Part shown: one piece after another, positions 4,908 to 40,515 of the stretch
Layout of the letters: each line of letters begins with the position of its first letter
How positions within the stretch are numbered: position 1 is the stretch's first letter
DNA from: Podarcis cretensis
Taxonomy: Eukaryota
Direction: 5' to 3'
NCBI GenBank assembly: GCA_951804945.1
Contig: OX638154.1
Coordinates: 38,936,001-39,000,000 of the forward strand
Length of the DNA stretch: 64,000 bases
Made by a program: the position numbers and the translations under genes
The notes under the pieces: model-generated
Database searches by the model: none
Told to the model about the DNA's origin: nothing
The model's input: the letters and a program-made list of their open reading frames with translations, nothing else

Positions 4908-5674
4908 GTGTGTAGCATGCATTAGTACACAGCATTCATCTTTTAACTTGGTGTGGTATGATGTGTTTATATGTTATTGCAAACTGGATACTTTTAGTTA
5001 AGAATATTGTAAATCTTTTGATGTATTGCAATTTAGTATTCTTTTTTAAAAATTGTAAATTGCTTTGAGATGTTTTTGTAGGGACAACTATCTCATAGTA
5101 ACAATAGTAACTACTGTTATAGTAAAGTCAGAAAGTAGTTACAGTAGCTATATTCGTTGTACTAAAAATAAAATAAATCCTCTGTGTACACATTTGAGAG
5201 TAATCCCATCAGTGGGGTTTACTTCTGATAGAATTCCTAGTCCTATTCAGGACTGTCTGAGAACTGAAACAGGGTTGTTTTCAACTAATTGATGTAGACC
5301 ATCATTTGATCTGCCTCTACCCACCATTGGTATACACCCCTTCCTTGATGGAGTATCCCCAAATGAATGTGGTTCTCAGCAGGAAAAAGTGGCCCATCAC
5401 TGTTTAAATACTATAGTAGCATCATGACCTGTGGCTTGATTAATTCTGTAAAATCTGTTCATTGACAAAGTGGGCTCTTAACTATCCTCTGAGAACACCA
5501 GCTATTACATTTCACTGGGCACAGAGAGGCTGTAGAAATCCCAAAACTTGTTTGTGTATGTGACAGTATTCACTGGTAGAAAATACCAGCACCACTTTTT
5601 TGCTACCCATGGCAGCCATTTTTTACTGGCACCGATGGCACGTTTATCAGTGTATGAGTACTGACACCTCATTT

Positions 5675-5995
5675 ATAATAATAATAATAATAATTTAATG
5701 ATAATAATAATTTATTATTTCTACCCCACCCATCTGCCTGGGTTTCCCAAGCCACTCTGGGCAGCTTTCAATGGAACATTAAAAACAGAATAAAACCTCA
5801 AGCATGAAAAACTTCTCTAAACAGGGCTACCTTCAGGTATCTTCTAAAAGTCAGATAGTTATTTCCTTGACATCTGATGGGTGGGCATTCCACAGTGTGG
5901 GCACCACTACCAAGAAGGCCCTCTGCCTGGTTCCCTGTAACCTCACTTCTCACAGTGAGGGAACTGCCAGAAGGCCCTCGAAGCTGGACCTCAGT
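5675..5995 (-). mobile_element. L2 LINE 3' fragment with (TAT)n tail
   Basis: Minus strand reads ..RQRAFLVVVPTLWNAHPSDV..FRRYLKVALFREVF (L2 ORF2 C-terminus), then 3'UTR and TAT-repeat tail; second copy at 23181-23330. Confidence 0.8.
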
Positions 5996-5996
5996 A

Positions 5997-6329
5997 TTCT
6001 TTTTTTGGTGGAGGGGAAGACAAACTTTATTGGAAGGACACAGGGTGGATTACCTCTCTCTGACCAAGCTGTACAAACATGTCACATAGGGGAGTTTTGA
6101 CCCCATTGGGCTAAAATCAGCAGCGGGCCTCAGAACAACCAGTGGGCCTCACGTTCAGACTCCAGAAGTGTGAGCACATCCCCTTCTCAGACTGGAATAT
6201 GGAATATGGATGATCAAAAGGCTGATGTCATCCTTGAATTCCACACAGACCTGGATGGACTGTGCCTGCGAGTTAGTCCGGTCCAGCACTTTGGTGACTC
6301 AGGCCAACTTGATGGGTCCATGGCAGAAG
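5997..6329 (-). pseudogene. RPS28: Processed pseudogene of 40S ribosomal protein S28
   Basis: Minus strand from ATG at 6321: MD-(16-nt deletion)-PIKLA*VTKVLDRTNSQAQSIQVCVEFKDDIS..II..PV*EGDVLTLLESEREAHWLF* (stop 6132-6130), matching RPS28; intronless, with 3'UTR, AATAAA (6031-6026) and A-tail remnant (6006-5997). Confidence 0.93.
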
Positions 6330-7318
6330 TGACACCTCATTTCTTACAAACAAACAACCCACCCCAAAAACCAACCCATTGGAAATTCGTAAACCTGGAT
6401 GAATCTAATTATTAAATTATACTTGACCTAATTATCTATTATGTTTCCTCTATTTTCTGATGGAGTGTAGTCAAATCAGTAAGTTAACTATAATGTAACC
6501 ATGTAAAGAGTATTATCAATATAAGGCAGCACCGTGACTGCGGAAGTATACTCCAGAAGATCCCTTTGTAGCAAGCTACGTGCTAAAGCCAAAAGATGAC
6601 AAAGCACAGAGCAAAGAGGAACTGCCTAATGAAGTTTCCAGGCTGGGGAAGGCACAGATAATCTATTGAATTTGAAACACCAAATCAACTGACAAATATT
6701 TCATGATTTTTAAACATTGTATTAATTGTTTCAATTTTTAAAAATTGGCAAAATGTGTGGGTTTTTGGAAACAGAACCAGGAAGTGTTCTTTTTTGGGTG
6801 ATTTCCCCCAAAATGCTCAACAACTTCCCCAAGAAAAGCTCAACTTTTTGCATCTGGATTTCTACTTTTTGAAATATGGCAACCCTAGGCTATAAGGACA
6901 TCTCCCTTTTCCCCTCCTGATATATTCAGGTTCCCTAGTTTAGGGATGGAAAACATGTGCTTCCCCCCACCATATATTGCTAGGCCAGCTGGGCTTATGA
7001 GAGTTTGATGCCCTATGGAAGGCCCCAAATTCCCCATTTTTGTTGTAGTATTCAGTTCCTAAATTACCAGCCAAATATTCCTGTATTCTGATGAAAGGTT
7101 TCAGAATTCAGACACTTACCCAAACATATTTCTCATTGCTTCAGTAGCAGTGGACACCATTTCCCCCCTCAGTAAAGAGTGCTCAGGAACACAGACCAAT
7201 TGCCCCAACCCTAAGTGTACTTTCATAAAACTAAGTTCTACAAAAACCAGAAAATGATGATGAAAGATCCCCCACCAATGCAAGATGACCAAAGCCAATA
7301 GTGTCAGGTATAAAATAG

Positions 7319-23180: not shown

Positions 23181-23222
<42 letters not shown>

Positions 23223-23330
23223 CCCACCCATCTGGTTGGGTTTCCCTAGCCGCTCTGGGTGGCTTCCAGCACATATGAAAATGTAATAAACATCAAACAT
23301 TCAAAACTTCCCTGATACAGGGCTGCCTTT
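23181..23330 (-). mobile_element. L2 3' end with (TAT)n tail
   Basis: Homologous to 5675-5830; (TAA)n at 23181-23220. Confidence 0.7.
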
Positions 23331-24575
23331 AGAATATGCGTACTAGCTGCAGATGCAGTCACAATGAAAAATATTATACAAGTCATCAAAACAAAATGAT
23401 TCAGTGTTTGTGTTTAAAGTAGTTTATGATCAGGTTTGAGCAACTGTGGCTACAATGTTGGTGAGGTGGGCAAACTTCTTTTTGTTTGGTTGATTATATT
23501 TTTCATGTGGTCACAAGATACAGAAAACTCCCTTATACTGAGTCAGACAGTTCAGTGCATCTGGCTCAATAGTTGTCCATTCAGCTAGCAGACACTCCAG
23601 AGTTTCAGGGAGGGGTCTCCTAATCTGGAGAAGCCAGGAATTGAACCAGGTGCCTTCTGCATATCTTTCTAAAGAAGCTAGATGAAGGGTCAACAACATA
23701 CTGCCTTCCAGAAGTTGCCCCTCACAGTGGCCTCCCATCATCCCTGACCATCCCTGGAGTCCAAAGACATTTTCGCAGTGCAGATGAACAATTGGCTCAC
23801 TCTTTGAGGACCACTTTTGATTTCAAACCACAGGATGAGGGAAGCAACATAACAAGCCAGTATTTTATCACTGGAAATAAACCATGGAAAAATCCACACC
23901 CTATTTAGCCTTCATATTTATCAGATGGTTTACATCTCCATGAAAGCCAGTATATATATACCAATCAAAACCTGATTGTGTTGAGTACTCAGGTGGCTCA
24001 GTTTAGTGCTGGACCAGCGGTATAATGCAGGTGACAGCTGAATTTAGGGAGCTGCTCAATAGAAGGTCCTGCCTTCCCAGCTGCATCCTCTTTCTGATGT
24101 GCGCATGGGCTGGTTGTTTGGAAGAGGCTTGTCTCATTGCTGAGCACAAGTTCCCAGGACTGGGATAAATGGCACAGCTCCTTATCAGCCACCTTTGCGA
24201 ACAAAGGCCCGTGGTGAGGAAAGTGTCCTTCCATAATCTTTATAGCTGCAATAGGACCTGGAGCTGCTCATGTCTGCAGACACATGAGCGGAGAGCGAGC
24301 ACTTAGCTGGCTGCTGATCTGTTGTTTCATTAAGGATTTTGTGTTGTAAAGTTATATGGCCCAGCCGAGCTCCTTACTGATCTTTAGTGTTTGTAAACAT
24401 TCCATAGTCTTTAGTGTAGTCCTGGTGACGTGGGGCATCCTGGTCAGGCCATCAGGCACCTTAAAGAGACATTGACAAGCATATGAGCCATGCCATGCCT
24501 TTGCTTACAGTTACAGTTACACCATGGTATTCAGTTCTCACCAGGAAGGCGTTTTTTAAGGCAGGCTCAGGGGCA

Positions 24576-40312: not shown

Positions 40313-40515
40313 NNNNNNNNNNNNNNNNNNNNNNNNNNNNNNNNNNNNNNNNNNNNNNNNNNNNNNNNNNNNNNNNNNNNNNNNNNNNNNNNNNNNNNNN
40401 NNNNNNNNNNNNNNNNNNNNNNNNNNNNNNNNNNNNNNNNNNNNNNNNNNNNNNNNNNNNNNNNNNNNNNNNNNNNNNNNNNNNNNNNNNNNNNNNNNNN
40501 NNNNNNNNNNNNNNN
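40313..40515. other. Assembly gap (N run)
   Basis: 203 Ns. Confidence 1.

Follow-up and report, generated by a model that had tools for sequence, protein, structure and literature searches.

A dead, intron-free copy of RPS28 and the terminal 325 bases of an L2-type LINE lie tail-to-head within a single 13-bp target-site duplication (TSD) in the window, the 64-kb stretch of DNA analysed here. A template switch is the simplest and the most likely account of everything found inside this one flush TSD. A single L2 target-primed reverse transcription event, in which the template was switched to the poly(A) tail of RPS28 mRNA, would have given a bipartite chimeric retrocopy, a reading to which a probability of about 0.57 is assigned.

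Reading the minus strand over 5400-6600 gave the order TSD, 5'UTR, RPS28 coding sequence, 3'UTR, AATAAA, A7, 0-4 nt, L2 end, (ATT)n and TSD (Table 1). The RPS28 and LINE segments are unrelated to each other and both lie on the minus strand, with the 3' end of the LINE on the 3' side. The anatomy described in the initial annotation, two co-oriented parts with one 13-bp duplication around both, is borne out by this reading and by a repeat with exactly two copies.

Table 1. Features of the RPS28-L2 composite in minus-strand order, with positions in the window
Feature	Positions	Strand	Remarks
5' TSD copy, 13 bp	6330..6342	-	AAATGAGGTGTCA on minus strand
RPS28 5'UTR remnant, 8 nt	6322..6329	-	CTTCTGCC, C + pyrimidine run (TOP-like)
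Decayed RPS28 (eS28) coding sequence	6130..6321	-	ATG 6319-6321, terminal TGA 6130-6132
RPS28 3'UTR	6007..6129	-	AATAAA at 6026-6031
A7 run, remnant of mRNA poly(A) tail	6000..6006	-	19 nt past AATAAA
GAAT, L2-derived or filler	5996..5999	-	L2 family consensus GGAC, two transitions away
End of LINE (L2-type) ORF2, last ~63 codons	5798..5995	-	one in-frame TGA, one frameshift, stop 5798-5800
L2 3'UTR	5722..5797	-	predicted stem-loop
Degenerate (ATT)n/(TAT)n microsatellite tail	5675..5721	-	flush with 3' TSD
3' TSD copy, 13 bp	5662..5674	-	AAATGAGGTGTCA again

The repeat unit, TGACACCTCATTT on the plus strand, has exactly two copies in the 64-kb window, 5662-5674 and 6330-6342, and no third one appears when a mismatch is tolerated. 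As such, direct repeats of this length are no rarity, 15 exact ones of at least 13 bp being found in the window at a spacing of 100-1500 bp. The two copies of this one, however, directly adjoin the final base of the (TAT/ATT)n tail and the first base of the RPS28 5'UTR. By our own arithmetic the chance of a 13-bp repeat lying flush at two fixed positions is about 4^-13 per pair, and its placement at two independently defined boundaries is far beyond chance. Since it adjoins both the mRNA copy and the microsatellite with no gap, the repeat is taken as the target-site duplication of the composite.

The flanks of the L2 part share nothing longer than AAA, though an A-run would hide a short duplication there, and the RPS28 part has no flanking repeat of more than 3 nt either. 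Directly before the 3' TSD stands (ATT)n in place of poly(A), and the A7 run is internal, in both respects unlike an L1-type processed pseudogene. After the L2 tail no A's are left over apart from the AAA native to the target. The consensus nick site of L1 is TT|AAAA. Written in the same notation the nick here is AG|AAAT, of which only the A-rich half fits.

The 5' part had been identified as RPS28, and this is upheld. A 47-aa piece at 6158-6298(-) matches the eS28 chains of solved ribosomes (PDB) with E 4e-5 over residues 14-53 of 69. Against Pfam Ribosomal_S28e the same piece gave E 0.0035, under the gathering score, because only 24 of its in-frame residues match. The remaining reading-frame pieces are MD.., PIKLA* and V*EGDVLTLLESEREAHWLF*, and together the coding pieces form an unbroken series from M1 to the stop, small indels aside, so that a recognisable, intron-free coding sequence with both UTRs is preserved. 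A coding sequence is thus present as claimed, but its decay is greater than the initial annotation implied. There are two stops inside the frame, both CGA>TGA. Five codons after MD are gone with a change of frame, a loss of about 16 nt, and the V14-E52 stretch is 2 nt short, the result of a frame-breaking 7-nt tandem duplication at 6193-6210 (TGGAATA on the plus strand) together with the loss of about 9 nt. Codons are changed at 17 of the roughly 61 alignable positions when the eS28 chain coordinates serve as reference, the last 16 reference residues being taken from established knowledge of eS28. Seven of these 17 are transitions of the CpG type that hit codons for Arg or Ser, both CGA>TGA changes included. 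Contig depth across the RPS28 part is near that of single-copy sequence and the composite is not amplified. The RPS28 copy is old, dead and single, and bears no sign of function.

Both ends of this copy resemble those of a mature mRNA. Ribosomal-protein (TOP) mRNAs start with a C followed by pyrimidines. Since the copy begins in the same way, reverse transcription appears to have got to the 5' end of the mRNA. At the other end the AATAAA, the 19 nt and the A7 form a genuine polyadenylated mRNA 3' end, which lies directly against L2 sequence.

The L2 part covers 5675-5999 in the same orientation as RPS28. Its 32-aa piece at 5854-5949(-) matched six proteins in a library of 1.84 billion, and the names available for the best matches are lacertid (Podarcis, Zootoca), which makes a lacertid lizard the probable source of the window. 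The C-terminus of three Zootoca proteins, P0004, P0007 and P0008, reads ...ERLHPHRSARTLRSS..RAFSVVAPTLWNALP..FRRHLKAALFREAFNV, and the three L2 reading-frame pieces are identical to it at 50 of 63 residues in all three proteins. An RVT_1 domain was confirmed in P0004 only. By these matches the 3' segment is the end of a reverse-transcriptase-encoding element, in keeping with the earlier description of an L2 ORF2 end and 3'UTR with (TAT)n. The L2 label itself comes from the simple-repeat tail and from an ORF2 C-terminal motif, which we take to be that of L2; on these two characters the element is probably L2-type. A literature text search for the motif returned no paper and the ESM Atlas gave no usable match to the 32-aa piece.

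The LINE family is abundant, with thousands of contigs per run. The summed contig depth of 1e5-3e6 is no measure of copy number, and it conflicts with the two copies per 64 kb. The second of these, at 23181-23332 on the minus strand, is the only other copy of this LINE in the window and is partial. It consists of 3'UTR only, 78% identical to that of the composite, is more severely 5'-truncated and has a perfect (ATT)13.7 tail, with no obvious TSD at that locus. Both L2 copies of the window end in (ATT)n and not in poly(A). A hairpin was predicted in the 3'UTR, CUUGGG-AAA-CCCAGG nested in CCCAG...UGGG, with a z of -2.7, a weak result from a comparison of two copies.

The A-tail lies close to the L2 start, as had been noted, but the gap of about 2 nt given in the initial annotation is not firm. 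Between 44 and 66 contigs per run extend past 5995 and their consensus translates to LHPHRSAR, in the same ORF2, so that L2 homology extends to 5995 at least. It plausibly continues up to G5999, where the family consensus GGACAC differs from the GAATAC of this copy by two transitions. The filler between the A7 run and the L2 part is therefore 0-4 nt.

On the minus strand the sequence AAGAA-A-TGAGGT at the 5' TSD (6330-6347) imperfectly resembles AAGAATACTGAGGT at the A-run/L2 junction (5988-6003). Shuffles gave p 0.01-0.05 for this likeness, post hoc, and the L2 half of it is ordinary L2 consensus (CTG AGG TCC = LRS). It may be due to chance or to an effect of microhomology, and fits no model better than chance does. 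An insertion of RPS28 with its own TSD inside an older L2 was rejected on the grounds that the flank likeness is imperfect, is shifted by 4 nt and has an L2 half equal to the L2 consensus. The junction 13-mer AGTATTCTTTTTT (minus strand AAAAAAGAATACT) at 5993-6005 has an exact second copy 958 bp away at 5035-5047; the sequence is AT-rich and the second copy is probably due to chance.

Parts of the stretch are carried by 19 public runs from eight organisms, and contigs of four organisms (G, A, C and F) were placed on the window at a likeness of at least 90%. The RPS28/L2 junction and the 5' TSD junction were present in all four. In each of them the contigs start at about 5953-5969, cross the junction and continue through the whole of RPS28 and the 5' TSD into the flank, as far as about 6882, as one contig in G, A and F and as two in C (5969-6263 and 6280-6882) with a 16-nt gap. 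A second contig per organism covers 5100-5664 (in F from 5270) and runs on for 44-67 letters into the microsatellite. The high repetition of the L2 part makes the contigs break there, and hence no single contig spans the 3' junction. The difference from the window was 0 in G, about 1.4% in A, about 1.2-2% in F and about 2.3% in C. The flanks of the insertion (5588-5648 and 6808-6900) contain other repeated sequence, with a summed depth of 1e2-4e4 against about 8-15 for single copy. Elsewhere in the window 203 N at 40313-40515 mark an assembly gap or masked sequence.

The presence of the chimera in four of four organisms places the insertion before their split, and it is old and fixed. The initial annotation had expected related lizards to show either the complete chimera or an empty site with one copy of the repeat. 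The chimera junctions were found in every case, while neither an empty nor an intermediate site, nor a joint skipping the 668 nt, was found among these four, all of which are close relatives. The result speaks neither for nor against a single event.

The priming end of the composite is an L2 tail, (ATT)n and not poly(A), and the event that made the 3' junction was therefore target-primed reverse transcription of the L2 type. The order of events and the identity of the enzyme, as we infer them, would be as follows. The L2 endonuclease would nick the plus strand of the window at ...CTCATTT|CTTACA, and the 3' end so freed would prime the copying of an L2 RNA from its (AUU)n tail. After about 325 nt had been copied, made up of the tail, the 3'UTR and the final ~63 codons of ORF2, the enzyme would depart from this template and carry on at the poly(A) tail of the very abundant RPS28 mRNA, to or near its capped 5' end. 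Cleavage of the second strand 13 bp away would give one TSD. The product would have been dead on arrival and would have decayed since.

Evidence on both sides of this template switch is found at the junctions. The one flush TSD, the co-orientation of the parts, the mRNA 3' end at the junction, the (ATT)n tail at the priming end, the lack of leftover A's after that tail and the poorness of AG|AAAT as a nick site for L1 all favour it. A fresh A-tail made by L1 is long, and only A7 is left between the two parts. Against it, the 3' TSD starts with AAA, and as the junctions are complete in all four organisms the two parts need not have arrived together.

The main rival, a two-step origin with an RPS28 processed pseudogene of the L1 type and its 13-bp TSD later hit in the A-run by an L2, is rather unlikely. 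The tail would have shrunk to about 7-10 A's, and a 5'-truncated L2 would have inserted in the same orientation no more than 3 nt from the border of the A-run and the TSD. With AAA at the start of the TSD, leftover A's are indistinguishable from target bases, and the same structure would result if L2 had nicked the edge of the short A-run of an older, L1-made retrocopy. The jump from L2 to RPS28 proposed in the initial annotation thus has the anatomy predicted for it, but owing to the AAA two successive insertions give the same picture. Both the length of the TSD and its A-rich start are compatible with L1, and the T-rich nicked strand suits priming on an AU-rich tail. The locus was also drawn from many windows, so that a rare coincidence can surface. 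Doucet et al. (2015) caution that a composite can also arise when the 3' end of one insertion is hit by another (PMC4476161).

At the codon level 17 of 61 positions are changed in RPS28 against 7-13 of 63 in the L2 coding part, a difference that is not significant, and the excess in RPS28 is explained by its CpG-rich Arg codons. Nominally the codon decay may lean slightly to an older RPS28 part, as two insertions would have it. They require, however, that L2 nicked one of about 1-4 specific positions of a single short A-run, and in the correct orientation. No duplication or deletion specific to L2 is visible, the nick site is a poor one for L1, the upstream A's number just 7, and the intermediate was seen in 0 of 4 organisms, all close relatives.

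An improbable alternative is that L2 copied a hybrid RNA, either an RPS28 transcript that ran past its poly(A) site into an L2 fragment close downstream of the parent gene, or that of an older RPS28-L2 composite locus with transcription from its 5' edge. The single TSD and the L2 tail at the priming end fit this equally well, and stringent LINEs mobilise any RNA that bears their 3' end (PMC4476161, PMC3747384). However, the A7 stands exactly at the distance expected for cleavage and polyadenylation, 19 nt past the AATAAA, and only by coincidence would a genomic A7 be followed immediately by a truncated L2. The TOP-like start of the copy and a near single-copy depth over RPS28, with no amplified composite family, also speak against a hybrid RNA. 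A chance or misassembled 13-bp repeat, with two parts that are mere neighbours, is very improbable, since despite the 15 such repeats in the window this one is flush with both independently defined ends, and the RPS28/L2 and 5' junctions recur in independent contigs from each of the four organisms.

According to reviews, LINEs of the CR1/L2 type leave few retrocopies owing to the recognition of their own 3' end (PMC3136929, PMC5470649, PMC3747384), and this requirement is usually invoked to explain why retrocopies are scarce where such LINEs dominate (PMC3136929, PMC5470649, PMC4476161). Doucet et al. (2015) described U6-L2 and U6-Mon-1 chimeras in platypus and three U6-L2 and six U6-AnolisSINE2 chimeras in Anolis carolinensis, and concluded that stringent LINEs make chimeras by template switching only (PMC4476161). 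A literature search for mRNA-L2 chimeras found no paper on them, only the U6 work and general reviews, which is weak evidence of absence. The initial annotation had spoken of a route for mRNA retroposition through L2 in squamates. Its novelty was overstated, as template-switch chimeras with U6 are published for Anolis and platypus (PMC4476161); the locus is a further example of a published process, and its mRNA partner a modest extension.

Like the U6 chimeras of Anolis and platypus, the composite has within a TSD the copy of a cellular RNA, followed in the same orientation by the 3' end of a 5'-truncated L2-type element, and like those of Anolis it has a lizard host. It differs from them in that its partner is not U6 snRNA but a polyadenylated mRNA, apparently of full length and with some of its A-tail, in that the host is probably a lacertid, and in a TSD of 13 bp against 1-9 bp in the platypus chimeras (PMC4476161). 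The bipartite retrogenes of mammalian L1 (U6-L1 and mRNA-L1; Buzdin/Gogvadze, Gilbert and Garcia-Perez, as cited in PMC4476161 and PMC2104539) likewise consist of two co-oriented RNA copies in a single TSD, with the primed RNA at the 3' side and a 5' partner that finishes at its own natural 3' end. In contrast to them, the priming end here is the (ATT)n microsatellite of an L2-type element and the nick is not TT|AAAA. An ordinary ribosomal-protein pseudogene made by L1 is also intron-free, with UTRs, an AATAAA, A's, a TSD of typical length and neutral decay, whereas in the composite the A-run is internal and of 7 nt and the 3' end of the element is an L2 tail. MINE and WEIRD-MGL of Magnaporthe grisea are, like the composite, chimeras formed through template jumps of a LINE other than mammalian L1, but in a fungal host, with a non-coding partner RNA and as an amplified family (PMC2104539), while the locus described here is single-copy.

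Chimeras like RPS28-L2 show a known loophole, in that an elongating enzyme of the L2/CR1 type can switch to any RNA. If the composite arose in a single event, a complete polyadenylated mRNA was copied by L2 in a squamate, which would extend the U6 cases and bear on the acquisition of LINE tails by SINEs. This locus alone, an old single-copy fossil, cannot tell the frequency of switching. A doubtful generalisation is that the stringent L2 reverse transcriptase of lacertids recurrently jumps to abundant mRNAs at their poly(A) tails, to copy them at full length, in which case some processed pseudogenes of squamates would be L2-made. Retrogenes would then potentially be L2-made as well, and not L1-made, and the L2 tail on each copy could permit renewed mobilisation by L2.

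The peptide of the L2 ORF2 C-terminus also turned up at the start of a gene model. P0001, a SAMD12 model of Podarcis muralis in UniRef, begins with LRSS..RAFSVV.P.LWNALP, a hint that an L2 fragment was exonised or that the model is an artefact of annotation. P0013, a second SAMD12 model of P. muralis in UniRef with 207 aa, belongs to the same cluster as P0001.
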